64,000 nucleotides of DNA, from positions 1,860,001 to 1,924,000 of the forward strand of contig NC_134029.1 in assembly GCF_964204645.1 (NCBI RefSeq), read 5' to 3'. Origin of the DNA: Tubulanus polymorphus (taxonomy: Eukaryota > Animalia > Nemertea). Positions 10,101 through 29,988 of the stretch are shown in pieces. Below the pieces are notes generated by a model. The model saw only the letters and a program-made list of their open reading frames with translations. It had not been told where the DNA came from and ran no database searches. The translations under genes and the position numbers were made by a program. Each line of letters begins with the position of its first letter. Position 1 is the first letter of the stretch.

Positions 10101-12632
10101 TACCTCTGAAGCTGAACTATTTGACGACACCAAGTAAGTTTTATCATCGAAAAATTATTATCTGATCATTTTCTAGTACCCTCTTCGAAAAATACCAAAC
10201 TTACAACAATCAACCTTTACAAGCTTTCCCAACTCAATCAACAAATTAGCAAAGCCATAAGCCCTAAATAATGAAACAAATACAACTTCAATATTTTCAG
10301 TGACGGGACCCATATCCTTCTGGTTTTGTACACTGAGCCTCCGGTCCTCACCCGGGTAAACTTTTCAATGTGTGATACACTATTTTTGCAGATATCGTCG
10401 AAGCTATGATTCTGAATTCACGGCTCCTCTCGTTGATCATCACGTCTGGCCCGCTCTCGTACAAGCTGGTCATACTATCGTGAAGGGTGAGGCTGTGACA
10501 AGAAGAGGTGCTTCTCTGGTAGGTTCACTAGACTTCACTCTTTTTCGAAGTGCATGAAATGTTTTATTTTGAGGCTGCATGTATTTATATGTTCTTCAAC
10601 TTCATTCAATGCACAAATTTCAATGAAAGTTTGAACCCTTGTACGTGAATTCTGCAGCGCAGATCTATCATGTTTCAGCGTAGATATTAAGTCGTTAATT
10701 CGGTGTCAATACGAAAGGTAAACAATTAATCGACTGTTTATTTATCTGGCATGCTTTCCTAAATACTAAATCAACACCAAACACACAAAGCTTTTTGTTC
10801 AAGTTTTCATAATTGAGAACATTTTGCTTCTGTATTAATGAAAGCGTGCCAGTTAGTAACACCAGTCATTCTCTATGGCTGCGTGCCATTCAGCTAACAT
10901 CGAGTCCTTTTACACTGAAGCGGCACTTTTTAGTTGGTAACTTCATTTATATTTCTTGTGTGTTTCTTATTTAGATACAGCCGTTTTCACACGTTGTAAA
11001 GTGTATCGACTGCTATCAATTTCTATCAAACTCGACTACACTGAAAAGAGTAGAACTGATCTATAATCACAGGGCTGGTTCTGATGGAATATACTCTGGT
11101 TTGTTGAATATTCCAGGCATTTTCTGTTCAAAATAATGCACCCTGAAGAGAATTCTAGATTTAGTAGGTTCAATCAAAACCTACCTAGGTTCGGTTTACT
11201 CTTTTACGTTTGTAGAGTTTTTAACTCGCTAGCTATATTGCATACCTATCTATCATTTAGTATTTCCTTCCATCTCTAACAGCATACATCCAGAAGTAGA
11301 AGCAAGAGTCCTGTGCGATCATTGAGTCCATCCCGGGCTGCCGCGACCCTGGCTAGAGTACGTGCCCGTAGTCGCTCCCCGAGCCCTAGACGGGCCGTGA
11401 GCCCTATCAATCTCAGTACAAACGGTGGAAGGAGCACCCCTACAGGTAAACATTGAAAAAAAAAAAACATATAATAATTTCAGTCAAAACTCATTAGATT
11501 CAAATCATTTGATAAATTCATATTGATGTACGCAATTCACTGTGCAGCAGGAAGTAGTTCTATTTCTAGTAGTAAGTGTTTAATTCACCTCCTTTTTAAA
11601 CGGCTCCATCTTCAATGGCTCCTTCTTCAATGGCTCCCTCATCAATGGCTCCCTCATCAATGGCTCCTTTATCAATGGCTCCCTCTTCAACGGCTCCCTC
11701 TTCCACCTCATCAATGGCTCCCTCTTCAGCTCCTTGATGCGTCAACTACTATTCATCTTTGTAATCATCGCTTCTAATTATTTCCCTCAATCTTTCCCTT
11801 TAGTAGAATTTCAGAACTAATTTCAAAGTTTATCATCGTTTGAAAAACATAAAAATGTATGATGTTGTAGGTTCCCATCTTCATCCATCCTCAGCAGCAG
11901 CAGTTCGTAGTGGTACAGCACGTACCAGTTCACGAGCTGCTCCTAGTACTGTACCACCTTCGAGCTTACGAAGTACCGCCCTTCCATCCTCATTGTTCTC
12001 AGATGATGAAGGTATCAATCTTATCGATCCCGCTTTTATCATTTAGCGTCACCCCAACAATATTTTACATCCTTATCTAAGCTCGCTGCGTGACAACTTT
12101 ACATATTCAGCATTGATTTCTAATTTTGAATGTAGGTTAATGATTAGTTTAAGACTATGCTACTCAACCAGTTCATCCTCAAGGTTCATCATCACATTTC
12201 AGAAATTAATCGCTGCCCTCCTCACTAACAGTAATATAAGCTAGGTTATAGCACTAACTCGTAAAGAGAAGCTTTCTTAATGCATTCATATTTTGATGAT
12301 GATTTTATATTACAAACGCATGGTATCATTTATTCCTAAAACTCTGGACCAGGTTCCATAGTTATAAGTTAGAATTCACTTTACGTTTAAATTAGTTCCT
12401 TTCCACTGTTTTCACTCTAGATACAAGTCTGTTAACTGAGAATCATGGAACTGACTCCAGTATTATGCATGAAATCTCTTTTATCATGTTGTACACATGG
12501 ATGTTTTTGCATGTTTTGAAAATTAAGTCATGAATTAATAAAAGACTCTTGTCACCAATGATAACTAATTATTTATGTTGCGGTTGTGTTTCAGGTGCCC
12601 GATCAACTCGCAGTAGTTTACGTACATTCTAA
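4160..12632 (+). CDS. SPATA18: Mitochondria-eating protein (Mieap/SPATA18), multi-exon, with candidate alternative internal and terminal exons
   Basis: Exons 4160-4246 ([18 protein letters not shown]), 5457-5562 ([14 protein letters not shown]), 5910-6132 (IKSRLLPWL), 6211-6306, tandem exons 6709-6909/7317-7487/7870-7983, 8558-8774, 9701-9859, 9958-10133, 10392-10518 ([28 protein letters not shown]), 11283-11445 (RSRSKSP-rich) and terminal exons 11871-12046 and/or 12595-12632. The N- and C-terminal motifs match SPATA18. Confidence 0.92.
7606..7718. mobile_element. Short palindromic MITE-like element (CCAGTTC-terminal family)
   Basis: Terminal inverted repeats ACTGGACCCAATTCA ... TGAACTGGGTCCTGT. 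Related copies at 8411-8513, 12344-12460, and partial ones near 20875-20949, 21282-21356 and 22518. Confidence 0.55.
8411..8513. mobile_element. Short palindromic MITE-like element (same family as 7606-7718)
   Basis: Perfect 14-bp terminal inverted repeat GATCCAGTTCCACA ... TGTGGAACTGGATC. Confidence 0.6.
11600..11728 (+). repeat. 15-bp minisatellite, consensus ATGGCTCCCTC(A/T)TCA, about 7-8 degenerate units
   Basis: Directly visible tandem units; they translate as [10 protein letters not shown] repeats. Confidence 0.85.
12344..12460. mobile_element. Short palindromic MITE-like element (same family as 7606-7718)
   Basis: Imperfect terminal inverted repeats CTGGACCAGGTTCCAT ... ATGGAACTGACTCCAG. 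Confidence 0.5.
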
Positions 12633-14577: not shown

Positions 14578-14649
14578 TAGCAGAGCGTGGTTTCGATCCA
14601 CGGACCTCTGGGTTATGGGCCCAGCACGCTTCCACTGCGCCACTCTGCT
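14578..14649 (-). tRNA. tRNA-iMet: Initiator tRNA-Met (anticodon CAT)
   Basis: Reverse complement AGCAGAGTGGCGCAGTGGAAGCGTGCTGGGCCCATAACCCAGAGGTCCGTGGATCGAAACCACGCTCTGCTA (72 nt). It has the A1:T72 pair, GGG/CCC anticodon stem and GATCGAAA T-loop of eukaryotic initiator tRNA, followed by oligo-T Pol III terminators. Confidence 0.98.
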
Positions 14650-15414
14650 CGGTGGAAATCGCCGCGTAGATAAATTATATATTCCCGTCAGTGTGCAAGG
14701 TGCAACCGTTGCAGTATTTCGTAAATTAACACTGTACTGCACAATATACTTGATTCGAGAAAGAATGAGATTTGTGTCAGAAATGTACTAATTTTGATTA
14801 AATCATTTGATATCCGAGACTTTATTAATCAGGATTCGAATTGATATGGCCTGGTTCTGAGGTACAAGAAATAGACTCCGCACTCTCACCTGTCACCACT
14901 AAATGAATGAACGTGTACCTGACGACTAGACCTGACCTGTTCAAAACTACCATTTATTCCTAATACAATGACAGATTTTACATCAAATATAACAGAGTAA
15001 GGAATTACAACCCCTCTTTTACTACTAACAATCACAAATAAGAGAATTCAGAAATCATCTTTTGAAGAAAACCGTAAAATAGTTCCTGAAATATTGAAAT
15101 ATCTAGTCTGTATGGAAATTGTTCAGTCCATACTATACACAGTTGTGTCACTGTGTCATACTAAATTATTAATAACATTTTCAGAATTGACCATCGTGAG
15201 ATTGACCAATCCAACAAGGTAGATTAATTTAATTACTAGACATTCTAAATGCCATAGCCGCAAGATCATAAGATTAGTAACCCACCTCCAGCAAACCAAA
15301 TAGCAATTGCAATTCTAGGTTTTATTGTTGAATAGGCCTATAAAAAGAAAAATGAAAATTATTTTGTTGTTATAATCTACCGAATTTCAGGTGTTTAATG
15401 GAGATATTGCAGTC

Positions 15415-18400
15415 ATGAAAGATTTAGTGCTTTTATCTGGTGAAGAGATACAATATACTACTTGTAAGTATGTATCGTTTTTGAATAACTGTCAGTGTTA
15501 CTCAGATAGTGAGTTGTTATTTTTGTGTTATTTTTATCAGCAGGTGAACCAGTCACATATATACCATCAGAAAGCACAGCTATACAAGGACTCCTGACTA
15601 TAACCAATTACAGACTTTGCTTTAAAAGCCTTTGTTTAGATACACTGAAGGTAAACCATCAAATATTGCCCTTATCTTAATTCTGTGTTTTTTGTCGTGC
15701 AGAATCAACTATGATAAACAAGCTTCATTCATTTCTAATTTCAGAATCCCGTTGTAGATGTTCCTTTAGGTGTGATAGCAAAAGTTGAGAATAATGAAAA
15801 TCAAATAGCTTTATTTTGTAAGGTAAGATCTCCCTGATACATGTTGGCCTGTATCATTGTCATTCTCTCCAATAGTTCTGCATGAAACGAGACAAAACAC
15901 TGATGACTTCTGCTGTCTATTTTCAGGATATAAGACGGGTAAAATTCATATTTGATGATGAAAATGTCCTCAATACAGCTTTATCTTGTCTTCAAAAATA
16001 TGCATTTCCCACTGCAAATGATCTGGTAAGTAAACATATCAAAATGTTTATGATCGACGGAAATGATTTGTGTTCAAAATTCTTTTATAAATGTATTGAT
16101 TTTTACAGCAATTTTTTGCATTTGCCTATTCAAAAACGTATAAAGAAGATGGATGGTTAATATACGATGAACTTGAGGAATACAAACGCCAGGTAAGAAA
16201 CATTGTATACACAAAATTTTACTGATTTAAGAAGTGGTCAATATATTCACTAATACATGGCCCCCTATATTATCTGCTTACTGTGATGAGAAATGACAGT
16301 TCCATTAGTGTTTTTGTGTTTTAGGGACTTCCTAATGATAAATGGAGGATCACTCGTACAAACAACAATTATGAGCTTTGTGAATCATATGGAAAAGTAG
16401 TAAGTTTCTTAATGTGCTAAAATCTATTCTTCTATAAACAATACCGGTATTAACACATGTCAATTTATGTTGATTCTTGTAGTTGTGCGTTCCAATGGAT
16501 TCAACTGATCAAGATTTAAAACTTGCTGCTGAATTTCGAGGTCGCTGTCGATTGCCTGTCAGTGTGCTCAAATTTGTTCACAAAATTACGATCGCTTTTA
16601 TGCTGTATATTATATAGAAATCTACTTTCATTCGAATAGATTTTGTCGTGGATCCATCCTGAAAATGGTGCTACTATTTGTCGGTCGTCTCATCCGCTGG
16701 TCGGAGTCGAAAATAAGAGGAATGATTACGACGAAAAACTTATCAAAAAAATTAGCGAAACTAATCGATTGAATGTTTATCGCATCATGGACGCTCGTCC
16801 TTTTCAGAGAGCAGAGGCAAATAAGGTCATTATGGATGAATATTTGAAGCATTTTATATCCAAATTGCCATTTCTTTAGTAAATGTTGGTATTAATTGTA
16901 TTTATTTGATATTTTAGACAGCTAAAGGTGGTGGTTATGAAAGAGAAGAATGTTACGAAAATTCTAAACTTGAGTTTCTCAATATACAGAACATACACGT
17001 AATCGCAGACAGGTAATTTACCAACTTCTTAGATAGATTTTTCTCGCAGAATCTTAACTGTTCTTAATTTATGACGTTACTTTTCAGCGTCAATAAATTA
17101 TGCGATTTATGTTTATCTGAAAAAGATGATTCCGATTGGGTAATAGGTTTAGAATGTACCCAATGGCTTCATCATATAAAAGTAAGTACCAGTTTGTTTG
17201 CAAACCAGAGTACAGTAAATCAGGAAAAATTGTTGACTGTTTATTTTAATGGTTTTGCAGAAAGTTTTAGAAGGTGCTGTAAAAGTAACAAATCATATTG
17301 TTAATAAGTCATCAGTATTGATCCATTGTACGGCAGGTTGGGATAGAACACCTCAGGTATATTTCACTACCCGGTATATTAGATGAATTCTATTGGGGTC
17401 ATTCATTTATTACGTACGCATTAGGGGAGGGGGGGTCAGTGCAATTGCGTACTGTAATGCTTAATGTATATGATAAAATGGCCGATTTTGCGTACAGAGG
17501 GGGGGGAGGGGGGTTGAAAAATTCAAATTTTATGCGTACGTAATAAATGAATGATCCCATTCTATTAGAGATACCGGTGCTTGTAGAATGGATGATATTT
17601 GTATTTATAGTTGGCGAGTCTAGCGATGATTATGATGGACCCTTACTACAGGAAAATCAAAGGTTTCGAAGTTTTGATAGAGAAAGAATGGCTTAGTACG
17701 GGACATAAGTATTCTACCGTGAGTATCACATACTCAATCTGACAGTCTAGTGAAGAAAAAACCTACAATACTGACGAATGATTAGGAGAGTAGTAAAGTT
17801 TCGACTCAATTGCTATGAGTCATTCAGCGCTGAATGGAAAACATAGCAACAATTCTCTCTTATATATCATATCAAGTTCAGGAACTGGTAGGCCTGTATA
17901 GGTCTTTGTCCTGATCAAAGCACTGTTCACGATTTTGCCAATTTCTTCAAATGGATTTTGCACTTAGTGGATGGATTGAGTAGGGTGGTGGCAAGATCAC
18001 TAGGCTACTCCATTCTCACAACAAATTTGTTGTCAGCCATATGCCAGTCAAGTCTATATTGTGAAGTTTTTCTGCAATAAAACAGTCAACCAACCGTCTG
18101 TGAACCGGCCTTCGTTTAACAGTATTGATTAGATTAGTTTTATGTGCGTTGTTTTACAGAGATTAGTTCACGGTGAAGATAATCACAATAGTGCTGATCG
18201 ATCACCTATGTTTGTGCAATGGATCGATTGTATCTGGCAAATATCTCAACAAGTAAATATATACCGTATACAGGATGAATAAAAGTCAACAATTCATCAT
18301 TTCAAAAATGATTGATCCCTGATATATTGTCTATTTTAGTTTCCTGGTGCGTTCGAATTCAACGAACATTTCCTGATTACGATCCTGGATCATTTGTACA

Positions 18401-18708
18401 GTTGTTTGTTCGGCACGTTCTTATTCAATTCCGAAATGCTTCGAACTAAAGAGGTAAAAATTCGTGATTCATTTCGTAATCATTTCCTGGGGTGCGATGC
18501 GAGTAAATTCAAAGAGAATATTCATGGTTTATTGTTTCAGGAAGTAAAAACTAGAACGGTTTCACTGTGGTCGTATATAAACTCAGATATTGAGCGGTAT
18601 GTAAACCCGCTGTATCGTCAGTCTGGTAAACATGTTATTGTTCCTGTAGCGAGTCTGAGCAGAATTCAGTTTTGGTCTAATTACTACGTTAGATGGAATC
18701 CGTTGTGA
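15415..18708 (+). CDS. Divergent myotubularin paralogue (MTM1/MTMR1/MTMR2 group): PH-GRAM plus phosphatase domain, altered P-loop, no C-terminal coiled coil
   Basis: 15 in-frame exons starting at about 15391, 15541, 15745, 15927, 16110, 16325, 16483, 16640, 16918, 17088, 17261, 17611, 18160, 18340 and 18541, with the same intron positions as exons 2-16 of the neighbouring MTMR2. Motifs [43 protein letters not shown] and FEFNE are present; stop after RWNPL. The start codon is uncertain (first in-frame ATG at 15415). Confidence 0.9.
17395..17558. mobile_element. MITE with terminal inverted repeats and an 8-bp target-site duplication
   Basis: TIR GGGGTCATTCATTTATTACGTACGCAT ... ATGCGTACGTAATAAATGAATGATCCC, flanked on both sides by ATTCTATT. 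An inverted copy lies at 47369-47518. Confidence 0.85.
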
Positions 18709-18850
18709 TGCAATTATCTCTCAGTCAATCAGGGACTAACTAGTATTGAAAACTGTGATATTTGCAATGTGTCTCAAGGAATTTTCTATAGTGTACTATC
18801 TTTCTACCTGATATGATAATGATATTTAAAAAAAGCTATTAAGATATTTA

Positions 18851-19070
18851 GGCTAAACAAAAATGATACCTTGTTTCTCCGCAGCGGCCGGGTCATTTTT
18901 GTAAAATATGATAAAATTTATAAACAGTTCATTTCTATAGCGGCCGGGTCTGTTATGGTGAAATTGATCACGATTTTAAAAAAAGTAATGTACAGGGTAG
19001 ATAGGCGGCCGGCCGGGTCAAGTTTTAAGCTCAACAGAGCAGAGAAACAAGGTATCAATTTTTTTTGGCC
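18851..19070. mobile_element. Tourist/PIF-Harbinger-like MITE, copy 1
   Basis: TIR GGCTAAACAAAAATGATACCTTGTTTCTC ... GAGAAACAAGGTATCAATTTTTTTTGGCC with TTA on both flanks. A near-identical copy lies at 29055-29270. Confidence 0.85.
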
Positions 19071-19536
19071 TTACTGTAAATCTAATGGATATTTTACTAA
19101 CTACTCAAAAGCTTCGAATTATTGTCTTGACAAGATAGCAATGTACTGAATTGGTGAATACTCTTAGATTTCTGGTAGAATTAATTGTCTTCCATTTTAT
19201 ATTTCGATCATTCCTCTTGATTAATATATTTTTATGTAATTTCTATACTGTTATACACCTTATGGCACATATATGAGTAGCAATAAAAATCTTCCAATCA
19301 TATTACTTATTGTCGTCCTTTAGTGGTTGGTTCCGCCCGAATAGCGACTTTCCGCTTGAATAACCTACTCTGGCACTCGAGGTAGACGAGGATTTCTACG
19401 GGCAGGTGCGAGATTCATGACGTCATCAATATGGCTATCCCGATGTGAACCATTTTCCGACTTTTTAATCAGAATTTACTGATTTATTACACCTTATTGA
19501 TCGATAATTCACCCCAAACAACACTCGCTCGATAAA

Positions 19537-22500
19537 ATGGACCCCCAAGAAACGAATGAAGAGTATTCAGAAACTGCAGGTCAAAGTGAACGTTTTGAAA
19601 ATCCTGAAGATAATAGTGAATCTGTGTCAATATCTGAGAAATCTGGCTCCCTGAAAAGTGCTACTGCGAGTAACGCCGATTCTAGCAGTAGCGTCAGTTT
19701 ATCTGGCAAACAATCTCCTTCAAAATCTCTCTGTTCATCAACTTCTACATCAACTGAGAATCTTCACAATGCGCCCGTAGAGCATATTCCTATGATAAAG
19801 GTAGGCAATAAATTTTTAGATAATTTTTGCAGTTTTTACAGTCGGAGTCTGGCTGGTCAGTGCTATTACAGCTTTTACTTCGTCTTTGAAATTCGTTTGT
19901 TGTAATGGGAATCAATTCTTCAAATTTCATTTGTTTTAACATAATTTTGGAAATTACGTTCTCATCATTTTACATCACTAATTGACAATACGTGTGAACT
20001 TCGACTACGAGACACTTTCAGGGACAACCTCCAAATACTAGACTAGATTTAGCCCTACCTTTTATATCAAGGCTTAGCTACCTTGAAGCTTAAACTTACA
20101 AAATACTTACATTCACTCGTTTCCCGTGTGAGGTTGTGGTATTAGTTGGGGACAATCTTTAGAGATACCACCTCTAAACTGGATTTGTGGTACTAATTTA
20201 GGGTCCTTTATCCCTATTTATCTTGTTTACGACTGACATGACTAAAAATAGACCCTTATTCGTTTTTATACGTGCGTACAATTTTTATCTTTTTATCCTA
20301 AATTTTCTATGCTTTTGTTGTTGTTAATGCATAATAAACTCTTGAGTGTTAATGACTTCCTTGTTTGCGTTTCCCTCGCGCTTAAAATCCAAACACGAAG
20401 CGCATTTACATCCTGATAAATATATGAAATAAATGAAATAGTTATAATGAAGGGAAGTTATTGCTGCAGTCTCAGTGACTCAGTCTACTATACAGTAAGC
20501 TGTTGAAATGTTTCGTTATGCAAGTACAATATTTCATCTGGATTCAATTCCTGAGGAAATAAACAGCGAAAACGGTGTAAAGAAAAAAAATATTCTTCGG
20601 ACAAAAAGTGATGCAGGGGTATGTTCAGCTAAAATATCAGTTTTTGTATTTGTTTGAATATTTAATCTCACCCCTGTTCGGTTGATGAATTTTGGTATCA
20701 GATCATTTCTTGATATCATAGAAGAAATAACTTACTTCTGTTGCCATCTTTTACAATAAATATTGTATATAGGCTCATGTAATTTGACACAGCTGTGGCT
20801 TAACGACATCACACCCTCTACATACTGACTTTAGAAAAACCATTCCTACCTTGTTTTGTTCATTGTAACAGAACGCACAGTTTTATACAACCACGACTCA
20901 TTTTACGCCTAGATTCTGCTAACTAGACTCACACTGTGGAACTGGGTTCAAACATAACGCGTATATTCATGTTTTGTGATAAAATTACGTCGTCGTGGAA
21001 AAGATAATTCTTATCACATGACACACAGATAATGTGTATATATCTAGTGTAAGGAGGAATATTGATCCGTTCTCTCTATACTGAAGACTGTTTTCACTGA
21101 GTGATTATTATTATATTTCGCTGGATTATTATTATTATAATATATATAATAACCCGTTATGGATAATGGAATACCCGGTGATACTGACTCTGAACAACTA
21201 GAATTAACTACTGTCAAATTCTTCAGCAATGAATATCACGAACATCCGATTGTATGTATATTTCATATCTAAACTTCAGAACACAGTTCTACGCGTTAAC
21301 TGTGTTATGTATTACCACTGAATTAAAACTTGAAACAACTGTGGAACCGGGTTCTGACTGTTGATTAAATCTGTCATCCAATTATTCCTTGAATTAAAAA
21401 AAATATGTGTCACATATACAATCAATGAACCTGCTCTATAGACTGGTGTGAAATGTATACTGAGATTAATTTATCCAAATTACTTTTTCCACATTCATTA
21501 GAAAATGTCAGTGAAGTAATTAACATTGCTGAAGGGGAGGGAGTCAAACTGTATACGATATATAACAGTAACCTGAGTTTATACCCGGTGTTTGAAATGG
21601 AAAGTGTTTGTATTTTACAGGTATCTAATAGAGATACAACTCAGAAAGCTGCTCCTGATGAACCACCATTATTACAGGGTGAAAAGATACAGGGCATGAG
21701 TAAGTTACAATTAATAAATTATTAAATTTCACCAATCTTATTGTTTTAATATGATTTTATGAATGGAATGTGGTTTGTTTTTAGCTCGTGAGGTCACCTA
21801 TCTCTGCCCATACACCGGACCAACGAAAGGAACTCTCTCGGTTACTAATTATAAACTATATTTCCGTAGCACTGATAGGGTACGTATAAGACCGTTCATT
21901 TTGGGTATCAAAACTATCATCTATTTCTTAAATTCGTCATCGTTGTTGTTTTATAGGAACCAGCTTTGATTTTGGACGTACCTCTGGGTGTGGTCAGTCG
22001 AGTTGAGAAAGTAGGTGGCGCTATGAGTCGTGGAGAGAACTCATACGGTATAGAAATATTCTGCAAGGTAAATAGAATAATTCTGAATACTGTGTTATTT
22101 ATTTGAAATGAATGAATCCTTCAGAAAATCCAGTTAAATCAAAAGTTGAATGAGAATGTTTCAGATTTTCTCTGTAGAGACCATCGTCGGGTATGGATTT
22201 TAATTCTATGATTTGTTGACTTTATGTTTTCAGGATATGAGAAATTTACGGTTTGCTCATAAACAAGAGAATCATTCTCGACGTCAAGTGTTTGAGCGAA
22301 TCAGTCAATACGCATTTCCTATCAGTAATAAATTAGTGAGTATTTTTCATATAAGGCACAAATTTCAGTTGTTTGTGTTCGGTGTTTGAGTTGATGAAAA
22401 TGTTTTTGTTTTTCAGCCAATTTTTGCGTTTGATTTCGATGAAGAATATGAAGAGAACGGCTGGTTAGTTTATGATCCGATTTCTGAATATAAACGTATG

Positions 22501-25500
22501 GTAAGTCAAATCGTTCAGGACACAGTTCCACAGTTGTGAGTGAGATTGAAGGCTTTCAATTGGCTTGATTTGAGTCAATTCCTAACTCTTAACTGTAAAT
22601 ACTGTGTGCGCAGTAATGCATTCCTAGAAGAGTTGTTTAATACTGGTACATTTACAGGGAATTCCTAATGACAGTTGGAGGATCACTCGAGCGAACGAGA
22701 ATTATGAATTGTGTGATACGTATCCACAGATAGTAAGTATTTTGATCTCTAGTTATTATTATGACTGATTATTGATTCACTGATTCAGTATCAGATTTGT
22801 ATGTTATGTTGTATTTCTAGTTAAGCGTTCCGGCGACTGCTACTGATGAAGATGTCAGACATGTCGCTGCATTCCGTAGTCGTGGACGTCTGCCTGTAAG
22901 TTGTTAACGTCCTCAAAAATTACTAGTTATAGAGGTTCTGCGGTAGAAACTGGTTTTGATTACAAATATTGTCCACCATAAAAAACGCATTAAGGCGTCA
23001 AATTTTAAACCCAAAGTTGATCACTGAAATTCCTAATGAACAGAGAAACAGTAATGAATCTAGAGCATTCATTACTGTTTCTTTGAAGATGGGATTTAGA
23101 CCATTTTGAAACTGTCAGAATAATAAATGAAGATATCATCAATTAATGAAGATATCATCAATTATTGGATCGTTCATTATCTTCAACACTCAGATGGAAT
23201 CTGGTGTTGTTTGATCTCTTATGGTCGATGGATGACATACTCTTGATTCCTCACATTGATGATTATGGAATGACCAGTTGTAATAGAGACGTTCAGTTTG
23301 CTGTATGAATTATTTGTTTTTTATAGGTTTTATCGTGGATTCATCCGGAGAGTCAAGCGACTATAACCCGCTCAGCTCAACCTCTCGTCGGAGTCGCCGG
23401 CAAGAGAAGTAAAGATGATGAACGGTATATACAGATGATTATGGATGCGAACGCGCAATCTCATAAACTCTATATTCTAGACGCTCGACCGAGTGTTAAT
23501 GCTGTCGCTAATAAGGTATCAATTCCATTAACAACTCTTTTTCTAAGGAATGGTAGCATTAGGGTTTGGAAATTTGCATCATACGTATGAGAAAAATATA
23601 TAGAAGTCACATTAAAAACCAATTGTAGGTAAACCTATTCAAATAAATGAAAAATACAACTGAAAAAACATAGATTTGTTTCATTTTTCATGAAAATGAC
23701 ATGACTAACACATTCCAGGCTGATAAACCGATTCATGGAAAGAAAAAGTCGAGAAGTTGTCCTCAGCTGGGTTCTCCCAGTAAACTGTCCGATTTAAAAC
23801 TTGATCATTTGGTAAAATTCTAACAGTTAATGTATATATAACAGTTAGGTGAATTGTACACTCTGGTTGAAATTCTGGTTATTGCTGAGATTTTCATGAT
23901 GCATGATCGATAAATCTCTAAGATCTGAGTATTTTTTTGATATTCTTGTTTTTGATTTCTAATTGTTGTTTTATTACTAACATCCATTACACATTACTAT
24001 TGGTGGCCTTCATGGATCGGACTTAGATAATAATTCATAAACGAATTTGTGTATCTTTTTCACCCCCAACTCATTCTAAGCTTTCAACCTTCTATTGTCT
24101 GTATATTAAAGCATGTTATAAAGCTTGGTATATTTGATTGTTGTGGGAAAGTGATATTCCTGAAAATGAAATAAAGTTCATGGGTTTTCACTCGGTTTAT
24201 GAGTGAAAGATTTATCTTGTTTATTATAGGCGAAAGGAGGAGGTTATGAGAATGAAGATTCGTATTCCAATGTTGAACTAGTCTTCTTGGATATTCACAA
24301 CATTCATGTCATGAGGGAAAGGTATAATCGTAGCCGGCCTATCTTCTGAAAATACTGTAGTTTTAATTTAAATGTTACCTATTTTTCACTAATCTATATA
24401 GTTTGAGGAAATTGAAAGATGTTGTTTATCCAAACATCGATGATGCCCATTGGTTGACTAGTATTGAATCAACACATTGGCTCGAACACATCAAGGTAGA
24501 TATCTGTTCGTCCAATTTAATGAGATTACCTAGGTAAATGACTTAGGAAAGTGAAAGTGATATGTTGATGATTATTTTCTAGCAAATTTTGGCTGGAGCC
24601 GTGAAAATAGCGGATAAAGTTGAGAGTAACAAAACGTCAGTGTTGATTCACTGTAGCGATGGTTGGGATCGTTCTTCACAGGTGAATATTCATCCATAAA
24701 TTCACCAGTTCAGTGTATTTAATAAACCAGTATTGATTATGTACCGATGTTCTATATTATAGTTGACGGCACTAGCTATGCTGATGTTAGATCCATACTT
24801 TAGAACGATAAAAGGATTTGAAGTTCTGATTGAAAAGGAATGGCTGAGTTTTGGACACAAATTCGGACTGGTAAAATTCTTGAATTTTGAGCACTTCCTT
24901 CGATGAATGCCTCTCTAAAGATTCTCTAATGCAGGGTTTACTATATTTTACAGCGTGTTGGTCACGGAGAAGATAAACACACTGATGCCGATAGATCACC
25001 TGTATTCCTACAGTTTATTGATTGTGTTTGGCAGATGACTAAACAAGTAAATATTAAACATCATCAATTTGCATTGCAAATAACTGCAAATACTGATGGT
25101 TAATTCCAATGAAATTTCACTTCATTTTCAGTACCCGAATGCATTTGAATTCAACGAACATTTCCTGATTACGATTCTGGATCATTTGTACAGTTGTTTG
25201 TTCGGCACATTCTTATTCAATTCCGACATGCTTCGAACTAAAGAGGTAAAAATTCTGTAGCAGATCTGAACTAAACTGTATGAGGTTAGATCTCTTTACG
25301 CACATGTCTAATTCTTAAATGCTCTCGATTCATTTCAGGAGGTTAAGACTAGAACGGTGTCAGTATGGTCATATATAAACTCTGATATAGAGGAATATAT
25401 GAATCCACTGTACGCGTCATATCTCAATCAACATGTATTATTACCAGTAGCCAGTCTTAGACGTATTGAACTATGGACCCGTTATTACATACGCTGGAAT

Positions 25501-25971
25501 CCTCGCATGCGCCCACAGGTAAGGGACCATTCATTAAGTATGAACAAATGTTTGGGGCTGGGGTCAAAAAGAAAAGAATGACCGGGTATACTACAAATAG
25601 CTCTGTTTGATTGAACTTGTTAAATTGGGTTAATCCAAAACCTGGATGAGAAACCATGGAAATTTCAAAGTGTCTCTAAGGATTATTCTGCTCCAACATT
25701 AATGAAACTCAGTCCAGGAATGTAGTCATAGCTTACAGAAAAATTTTCATTTCTACACAGGCTTTTTGTGTGTATTAGAATTAGAGAAGTTGAATATAAT
25801 ATCTTTCTGTTACAGGAACCAATTCATCTTAGAAATCGAGAGTTGTTATTGCTGAAGGCTCAACTGCAAAAGAGATTGGAGGAATTGCAGCGAAGTTTGG
25901 ATCAGAAGCATATTCGTAGTAATCGACCTGATTCAGCCTCTCCACAGTTATCTCCAGCTGTCCTGGTATGA
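19537..25971 (+). CDS. MTMR2: Myotubularin-related protein 2-like PI3P/PI(3,5)P2 3-phosphatase, 17 core exons
   Basis: Ser-rich exon 19537-19800, PH-GRAM exons ([27 protein letters not shown]), [12 protein letters not shown]|AKGGGYE, catalytic HCSDGWDRS (codons from 24649), coiled-coil last exon 25817-25971 ending in PAVLV* (PDZ-ligand-like). It is probably the co-orthologue of MTM1/MTMR1/MTMR2. Confidence 0.95.
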
Positions 25972-28739: not shown

Positions 28740-29054
28740 AATGTCTGTGGTGTATTTATTGAGTGAATGATAATCGATGTATTATGTACTTTGTTATCTT
28801 TAGTATTGTAAAAATTCTTAAGAAAAATGTATATTTTGTATTTCAATAAAGTTTACAAAGCTTCAACTACTTGACAGTGTTTTGTGAAATTAGATTTGTG
28901 ACGTTCTTGATGATACAGACAGCAAGATGGGGAGCTATGACTTTACCAAGACTACTGATTCAAACTACATGTACATTGGAAACTACCCGGTATTCTCCTT
29001 CCCACATGGATTGTATCCAAGGCGAAATTTATCCTATCAAATCAAATTTGATTA

Positions 29055-29270
29055 GGCTAAACAAAAATGATACCTTGTTTCTCCGCAGCGGCCGGGTCAT
29101 TTTTGTAAAATATGATAAAATTTATAAACAGTTCATTTCTATAGCGGCCGGGTCTGTTATGGTAAAATTGATCACGATTTTAAAAAAAGTAATATATAGG
29201 GTAGATAGGCGGCCGGGTCAACATTTAAGCTCAGCAGAGCGGAGAAACAAGGTATCAATTTTTTTTAGCC
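29055..29270. mobile_element. Tourist/PIF-Harbinger-like MITE, copy 2
   Basis: Near-identical to 18851-19070, with GGC...GCC ends and TTA flanks. Confidence 0.85.
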
Positions 29271-29988
29271 TTATGCCAGGATTAATTCGGCTCTGTGCTG
29301 ATTTTTGCAAGAAATGGATAGAACATTTCATCACAACGAACTGTTTTCACTACAATTCTATATTTATTCTTCAGTTCATTAACGAAATCTTAATGTTTAT
29401 ATAAAGATTTTTAGCCTAACAGAAAATTAAGCATTCTATTTATACAATATACAATAGTATTATTAATGGTAATAAATTATAAGTTAGAATATTTATTTCC
29501 TTTAAACATTTTTAATGTTTCGCTCTATAAAATCAATATCGAGTACATGTATTTACAGAATTTACATAAATGAAAAGAAAAACAATTAAAAAAACAAACA
29601 TTTTTCAGAACGCTAAAATTCTGACGTTGTGCATTTCATTTTTCAGTAAATAACGATGTTGGTATTTAAAGATTAATCTCTATCTTCAACGATTCATGGA
29701 AAGATATACGGAGCATTTGAGCCATTTTCAGAATGGATCATGCATTGATGAGAATCATGACGTTATAAATGTACTTTATATTTTATACAAAACAGCAGTT
29801 TCTATAAAAAGCTGAGAGATAACAACACTGATCTTACCGACTTAATGCATTTCAAATCACAGTCTTGATTAGACAGTAAATCCTCGCATTTCAAATTTTA
29901 GGCTAGAACGCTGTGCTTTTCAGAAAGTCCAGCTCTTCAAACCATCTCAGTCAAAATCAAGGGGGTATCACCACCAAGTATTTTCTCT

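Follow-up and report, generated by a model that had tools for sequence, protein, structure and literature searches.

A divergent tandem myotubularin with a Thr-Ala P-loop in the nemertean Tubulanus polymorphus

The window analyzed here is a 64,000-nucleotide (nt) stretch of Tubulanus polymorphus DNA (contig NC_134029.1, positions 1,860,001 to 1,924,000, assembly GCF_964204645.1), in which two myotubularin genes lie one after the other on the forward strand. The upstream gene, termed gene A, carries a phosphate-binding loop (P-loop) of HCTAGWDRT, and its neighbor, gene B, carries the canonical HCSDGWDRS. We consider it about an even chance that gene A encodes a maintained, specialized phosphoinositide 3-phosphatase, probably a monomer, whose engagement with membrane or substrate and whose binding of partners are altered. 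Since the catalytic residues are all kept, the product of gene A is most likely still a phosphatase, and its divergence looks like sub-functionalization or specialization, not new chemistry. Judged from its predicted protein, gene A is a lineage-specific, truncated paralogue of the MTM1/MTMR2 type with an unreported P-loop. Positions are counted from the first letter of the window, and the coordinates are collected in Table 1.

Tandem duplication and maintenance of gene A

The joined exons of gene A amount to 1548 nt, or 515 codons and a stop, and all 14 introns have GT-AG boundaries with pyrimidine-rich acceptors. Six of the exons (8, 9, and 11-14) matched the Pfam family PF06602 (Myotub-related; cut-off 25 bits) in collinear order over profile positions 85-351. 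Exons 1-4 are collinear with the GRAM region of gene B except for a deletion of nine residues, and exon 2 alone scored 21.1 bits with the GRAM model (cut-off 23.6 bits). The exon translations also match the solved chains of MTMR2, MTMR1, MTMR6, and MTMR8. In phylogenetic trees, genes A and B were both placed inside the metazoan MTM1/MTMR1/MTMR2 group with fish MTMR2 and MTM1 (support 95; 94/96), and a sister relation of the two was neither resolved nor rejected (log-likelihood difference 0.15; approximately unbiased test, p-AU 0.41).

The two genes share 57% protein identity, and every intron position and phase is common to them over 15 exons. The identity to fish MTMR2 (P0007) is 67% for gene B and 50% for gene A. 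Exon 8 of gene A matches only genes A and B genome-wide, and thus there is neither a third copy nor a retrocopy. Five other PF06602 loci are present in the 268-Mb genome, two of which show CSDGWDR. These comparisons identify gene A as a tandem duplicate of a gene B-type MTM1/MTMR1/MTMR2 gene, the single one of this worm. The description of the locus in a first-pass annotation as an intact tandem paralogue, with 15 exons in frame and normal splice sites, is in agreement with the open joined frame, the GT-AG boundaries, the shared intron positions and phases, the protein identity, and the signs of purifying selection described below. In vertebrates, MTM1 and MTMR1 are head-to-tail neighbors that arose by local duplication, and neither lacks the coiled coil or the CSDGWDR loop. 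The worm genes are likewise adjacent paralogues of the same subgroup, and their duplication appears to be independent of the vertebrate one.

Saturation at the synonymous sites of the two copies (synonymous difference pS 0.72, nonsynonymous difference pN 0.27) shows that the duplication is old, and their coding DNA differs by 37% overall. The ratio of nonsynonymous to synonymous rates (dN/dS) was about 0.14, which is away from the neutral value near 1. When the coding sequence of gene B was mutated neutrally to the observed divergence, a stop-free outcome was obtained in 0 of 20000 simulations. Conservation was scored on 34 diverse full-length representatives of the family, and of the 74 columns conserved at 90% or more, gene A keeps 66 and gene B 71. 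The changes in gene A fall on 8 of these 74 columns vs. 211 of the 435 others (Fisher p = 1.4e-10).

Gene A has evolved roughly four to seven times as fast as gene B. The Tajima relative-rate test with fish MTMR2 as the outgroup counted 116 changes unique to gene A and 29 unique to gene B (p = 5e-13), and the terminal branches were 1.01 and 0.15, respectively. When dN was divided four to one between the copies and each branch was given half of the saturated, and so underestimated, dS, the dN/dS of gene A itself came to about 0.2-0.25 or lower. This ratio indicates that gene A has been under purifying selection through most of its history, although weaker than that on gene B.

One exon departs from this pattern. 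Exon 14 (18340-18453 in gene A, 25132-25245 in gene B) is 91% identical in DNA, whereas the other exons are 49-73% identical and its flanking introns about 50%. Synonymous difference in 60-codon windows was 0.44 at this exon vs. 0.65-0.86 elsewhere. The introns of the two genes are similar only at background level. Exon 14 is therefore a probable gene-conversion tract, short and exon-sized, between old tandem paralogues.

The active-site loop and the substrate pocket

Direct reading of the codons gave HCTAGWDRT in gene A against HCSDGWDRS in gene B, as the first-pass annotation had stated. Loop position 2 has changed from Ser to Thr and position 3 from Asp to Ala, where Ser and Asp are each conserved in 33 of the 34 representatives, and gene A has CTAGWDR in place of the full signature CSDGWDR. 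Four of the six bases differ at the two changed codons (ACG GCA in gene A, AGC GAT in gene B), so the change is not a single base-call slip.

The loop is rare. A Cys..G.DR loop occurs in 44 of the 150 best cluster representatives (clustering at 50% identity); 41 of these have CSDGWDR and one each has CADGWDR, CSGGTDR, and CSHGWDR. None of the 44 has Ala at loop position 3, so that no CxAGWDR myotubularin, the target of the proteome check proposed with the first annotation, is among them. The strings CTAGWDR, CSAGWDR, and CAAGWDR occur in no searchable paper, nor do five further loop strings, a set that takes in CISGWDR and covers the MTMR14 loop.

MTMR2, MTM1, and MTMR1 form the active subgroup of myotubularins, and solved structures are available for them (1LW3, 1ZSQ/1ZVR, and 5C16). 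Gene A shares with them the phosphatase domain and the catalytic residues, along with a predicted PH-GRAM domain, and its exon structure is that of the worm orthologue. It differs from them in the loop CTAGWDR, in the replaced hydrophobic residues of the membrane helix, in one inserted residue, in a shortened GRAM loop, in the absence of an N-terminal extension, coiled coil and C-terminal tail, and in its faster rate. The inactive myotubularins MTMR5 and MTMR9 to MTMR13 lack the Cys and/or the Arg of the loop. Gene A is also divergent with a changed P-loop, but it keeps both residues and branches within the MTM1/MTMR1/MTMR2 group.

Residues were mapped by PDB alignments (MTMR2 chains 1lw3, 1zsq, and 5gnh) together with the A/B alignment, and their roles were taken from the work on MTMR1 (PMC4809516). 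In that enzyme Cys438 is the nucleophile, Asp443 within the loop serves as both general acid and general base, the phosphate is bound by Arg444, and Arg484 is essential and tethers Asp443 (PMC4809516). Gene A retains the Cys, the Trp, the general-acid Asp, the Arg, Asn330, and the Asn-Ile-His stretch, as well as the Arg tether (MTMR1 Arg484, the Arg463 equivalent), which belongs to the GHKYSTR segment encoded by exons 12 and 13. The catalytic apparatus encoded by gene A is thus intact. The earlier proposal that this copy fits neither the active nor the inactive class did not hold, as the Cys, the Arg and the P-loop Asp general acid of the active class are all kept, and the loss of Cys and/or Arg that marks the inactive class is not found.

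The two substituted positions have different roles in MTMR1. The D3 phosphate is held through main-chain atoms of six loop residues, and Asp440 at position 3 is the sole loop residue without contact to this scissile phosphate; it pairs with Lys285, and the K285A mutation had little effect (PMC4809516). A basic residue is kept in gene A at the Lys285-equivalent position. The D1 phosphate is held by Ser439 at position 2, Asn351, and Arg444, while the exclusion of 4-phosphorylated lipids has been ascribed to Trp442 and Arg484 (PMC4809516). The equivalents of Trp442 and Arg484 are both unchanged in gene A.

Further changes surround the pocket. In MTMR2, Val325, Val328, and Ala332 are surface hydrophobic residues for membrane contact on a helix shared with the Asn, and the MTMR1 helix carries hydrophilic residues with ordinary specificity retained (PMC4809516). 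The equivalents of both Val residues are polar or charged in gene A, and an extra Thr lies directly after Lys331, beside the D1-phosphate-binding Asn, where exon 9 measures 95 nt compared with 92 nt in gene B. According to this mapping, the notable pocket changes (positions 2 and 3, V325Q, V328E, and the Thr insertion) all lie on one side of the pocket, that of the D1 phosphate and diacylglycerol. The other alterations listed in the first-pass annotation were all recovered in the A/B alignment, namely SSHP, SYG, VIADS, WLSTGHKY (WLSFGHKF in gene B), the Thr after ANK, and the nine-residue GRAM gap. A Thr to Lys substitution in YYRT is a further non-conservative change at a near-invariant site.

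PTEN and the dual-specificity and classical tyrosine phosphatases have an HCxAGxxR loop and use Cys-phosphoenzyme chemistry. Gene A resembles them in having Ala followed by Gly at the third and fourth loop positions, but its domain is wholly myotubularin and its general acid lies in the P-loop and not in a WPD loop. The P-loop exon scored 31.8 bits with Myotub-related, while its scores with DSPc (17.2 bits, cut-off 33.5) and Y_phosphatase3 (21.8 bits, cut-off 22.2) were under their cut-offs. Likeness to these loops was rejected as a distinguishing trait, since the normal exon of gene B gives similar weak matches. As the exon of gene A does no better on these models than that of gene B, nothing in the sequence suggests convergence beyond the Ala-Gly dipeptide.

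Gene ends, neighboring genes and repeats

The span 15391-18708 given in the first annotation stands as a 15-exon frame but not as a complete coding region from its first base. Position 15391 is the base right after a strong acceptor ending at 15390 and holds no start codon. The earliest in-frame ATG, at 15415, is the likely start and gives 507 codons. The acceptor suggests that an upstream exon of gene A exists. The TATAAAAAG motif at 15340 could equally be a promoter mark of gene A, in which case translation would begin at ATG 15415, behind a short upstream open reading frame. This upstream frame (15398-15418) begins with an out-of-frame ATG and has six codons, and its TGA overlaps ATG 15415 (ATGA); the stop-start overlap could permit reinitiation if the transcript begins upstream. 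Local BLAST (14602-14650 left out) found no exon resembling the Ser-rich first coding exon of gene B for gene A.

At the other end, gene A stops just past the phosphatase domain and has no counterpart of the last exon of gene B. The C-terminal coiled coil and tail of the MTM1/MTMR1/MTMR2 subgroup are not present, so that in total gene A is without the N-terminal exon, nine GRAM-loop residues, the coiled coil, and the C-terminal exon. Intron 14 (18454-18540, 87 nt) is in frame and stop-free, and its retention would add 29 residues. Intron 11 is 254 nt long in gene A vs. 81 nt in gene B, and intron 12 is 441 vs. 83 nt; both are enlarged in gene A by insertions of transposable elements, including one resembling a miniature inverted-repeat transposable element (MITE).

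Gene B is a conventional gene of the MTM1/MTMR1/MTMR2 type. Its 5' coding exon is followed by sixteen more exons ending at 25971. The aligned exons start at 21597, and an in-frame acceptor at 21621 is a candidate for the join after 19800. About 100 nt before its start codon, positions 19408-19435 hold a palindromic TGACGTCA, similar to a cAMP-response element (CRE-like), followed by a CAATATGGC motif. This site is likely to be a core promoter element of gene B.

Several repeats were observed outside the two genes. A MITE-like element with 33-nt inverted ends occupies 18850-19071 between genes A and B, and a related copy lies inside 28871-29404. The 177-codon open reading frame (ORF) at 28871-29404 translates this copy, so this frame is likely to be repeat sequence instead of a gene. 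A short-period tandem repeat at 11523-11777, in a seemingly gene-poor stretch upstream of gene A, translates as a QWLP-type peptide repeat on one strand and as a Glu/Gly/Ala/Ile repeat on the opposite one.

Table 1. Positions of genes A and B and of their altered or retained sites in the window
Feature	Position	Strand	Remarks
Gene A, divergent myotubularin copy	15391-18708	+	15 coding exons, joined frame open
Gene A 5' region	15340-15417	+	TATAAAAAG at 15340; acceptor end 15390; ATGs at 15398 and 15415
Gene A exons 1-5	15391-15463, 15541-15650, 15745-15822, 15927-16025, 16109-16192	+	
Gene A exons 6-10	16325-16399, 16483-16557, 16640-16825, 16918-17012, 17088-17181	+	
Gene A exons 11-15	17261-17356, 17611-17718, 18160-18252, 18340-18453, 18541-18708	+	
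Nine-residue deletion, PH-GRAM loop	site 15790-15795	+	Exon 3; A/B alignment
Pro to Gly (TYP to SYG)	16391-16393	+	Pro conserved in 33/34 representatives
Gln to His (SxQP; SAQP to SSHP)	16691-16693	+	Gln conserved in 32/34 representatives
End of helix alpha-5 equivalent	16805-16825	+	Alignment to MTMR2 chains 1lw3, 1zsq, 5gnh
Val325 to Gln	16805-16807	+	MTMR2 numbering, membrane-contact helix
Val328 to Glu	16814-16816	+	MTMR2 numbering, membrane-contact helix
Asn330, kept	16820-16822	+	Lys331 kept too
Extra Thr codon	16918-16920	+	Start of exon 9
Arg to Ala (VMRES to VIADS)	17005-17007	+	Arg conserved in 32/34 representatives
Gene A P-loop HCTAGWDRT	17324-17350	+	CAT TGT ACG GCA GGT TGG GAT AGA ACA
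Cys nucleophile, TGT	17327-17329	+	Gene A loop
Thr, loop position 2	17330-17332	+	Gene A loop
Ala, loop position 3	17333-17335	+	Gene A loop
General-acid Asp, GAT	17342-17344	+	Gene A loop
Arg, AGA	17345-17347	+	Gene A loop
MITE-like insertion	17394-17559		Gene A intron 11; 28-nt terminal inverted repeats, G-rich internal runs
Gene A stop codon	18706-18708	+	Five codons into the stretch where gene B continues
Gene B, conventional MTM1/MTMR1/MTMR2-type gene	19537-25971	+	Downstream of gene A, same strand
Gene B 5' coding exon	19537-19800	+	Ser-rich; ORF
Gene B P-loop HCSDGWDRS	24649-24675	+	CAC TGT AGC GAT GGT TGG GAT CGT TCT
Gene B last exon	25816-25971	+	Coiled coil and C-terminus

Weighing the readings and their meaning

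According to the reading we prefer, a gene of the MTM1/MTMR1/MTMR2 type would have been duplicated in tandem long ago, and purifying selection would then have preserved the copy, which evolved at about four times the rate of gene B. Its product of about 507 residues would be a pared-down myotubularin, made up of a PH-GRAM domain whose loop is shortened and the phosphatase domain after it, without the Ser-rich N-terminal exon, the coiled coil, or the C-terminal tail. This protein would still use the ordinary Cys-phosphoenzyme mechanism as a phosphoinositide 3-phosphatase, and its membrane engagement or kinetics would probably be altered. Because there is no coiled coil, the usual pairing with the product of gene B or with catalytically dead partners is probably not possible.

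Several observations weigh against this reading. Loop position 2 is sensitive: in MTM1 the S376N mutation at this position abolishes activity through the loss of a D1-phosphate hydrogen bond and a steric clash (PMC3469422), and by analogy the bulkier Thr, although it keeps the hydroxyl, could weaken substrate binding. Non-conservative substitutions also affect three more near-invariant sites (Pro to Gly, Gln to His, and Arg to Ala). After the stop codon of gene A, the earliest AATAAA is at 19282, about 575 nt away. Five public sequencing runs are listed for the species and four of them hold the stretch, but a 2015 run guessed to be RNA (none is on record as RNA) holds next to none of its words. 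Finally, a search of 1.84 billion representatives with 18340-18705 returned ordinary MTM1/MTMR1/MTMR2 proteins and fragments and no A-like protein, although proteins of this kind can be masked by length filters and by clustering at 50%. The word-index searches are weak blanks for the same reasons, with 66 matches and none A-like for 18340-18705 and zero candidates for exon 8 of gene A.

An unlikely alternative is that gene A encodes a pseudo-phosphatase or a very weak enzyme, whose fold and pocket are kept for lipid or partner binding. In this case, with the same low probability, catalysis would be crippled by the Thr at position 2, the lost Asp brace at position 3, and the replacement of the VMRES Arg by Ala. 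The phosphatase-dead MTM1 S376N affects the same loop position, phosphatase-independent roles of myotubularin are documented (PMC3469422), and the near-invariance of the position-2 Ser and the position-3 Asp points the same way. However, loss of the Cys and/or the Arg characterizes the myotubularins known to be dead, whereas gene A keeps both and the general acid too. The hydroxyl survives the Ser to Thr change, and Ala at position 3 is standard in the wider Cys-X5-Arg superfamily. In addition, MTMR1 K285A removes the partner with which Asp440 pairs, and this had little effect (PMC4809516).

It is quite doubtful that gene A has been neofunctionalized into an enzyme with another substrate preference, e.g., for soluble inositol phosphates or differently presented lipids. 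The position of all notable pocket changes on the D1-phosphate and diacylglycerol side, the fourfold faster evolution, and a loop found in none of the 44 motif-bearing representatives and in no searchable paper would fit such a shift. Yet the Trp and the Arg tether, held to exclude 4-phosphorylated lipids, are unchanged, the MTMR1 helix is hydrophilic too with ordinary specificity (PMC4809516), and relaxed constraint explains the faster rate equally well. The boldest form of the proposal, to which we also assign only a small probability, is that gene A yields an expressed and catalytically competent myotubularin and that selection has remodeled nothing but the pocket side facing the D1 phosphate and diacylglycerol, so that the enzyme would act on a substrate class (soluble inositol phosphates, for example) or in a membrane context of no known myotubularin. 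If this were true, gene A would supply the first CxAG myotubularin from nature, and its protein, having no coiled coil, would work alone.

There is a slim chance that gene A is a silent or recently inactivated copy in which disabling mutations are still to come. The near absence of the stretch from the 2015 run, the unclear 5' end with its upstream out-of-frame ATG, the distance to a poly(A) signal, the missing terminal exons, and the enlarged introns 11 and 12 are all consistent with silence. On the other hand, silent sites are saturated, yet the reading frame, 28 of the 28 splice sites, and 89% of the near-invariant residues survive, and any loss of function would thus need to date from very recent times. 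That the active-site sequence is an assembly or base-call artefact has negligible probability, given the four base differences inside the two changed codons, the 37% DNA divergence from gene B throughout gene A, and the presence of the stretch in four public runs of the species.

If gene A is silent or enzymatically ordinary, it is merely a lineage-specific divergent duplicate. Myotubularins are disease genes (X-linked myotubular myopathy as well as Charcot-Marie-Tooth type 4B), and CSDGWDR is nearly invariant among them. A maintained Thr-Ala copy with intact catalytic residues would be a natural experiment on the part that these two positions and the membrane helix play in substrate binding, and gene A also poses the question of whether a myotubularin can function without its coiled coil.

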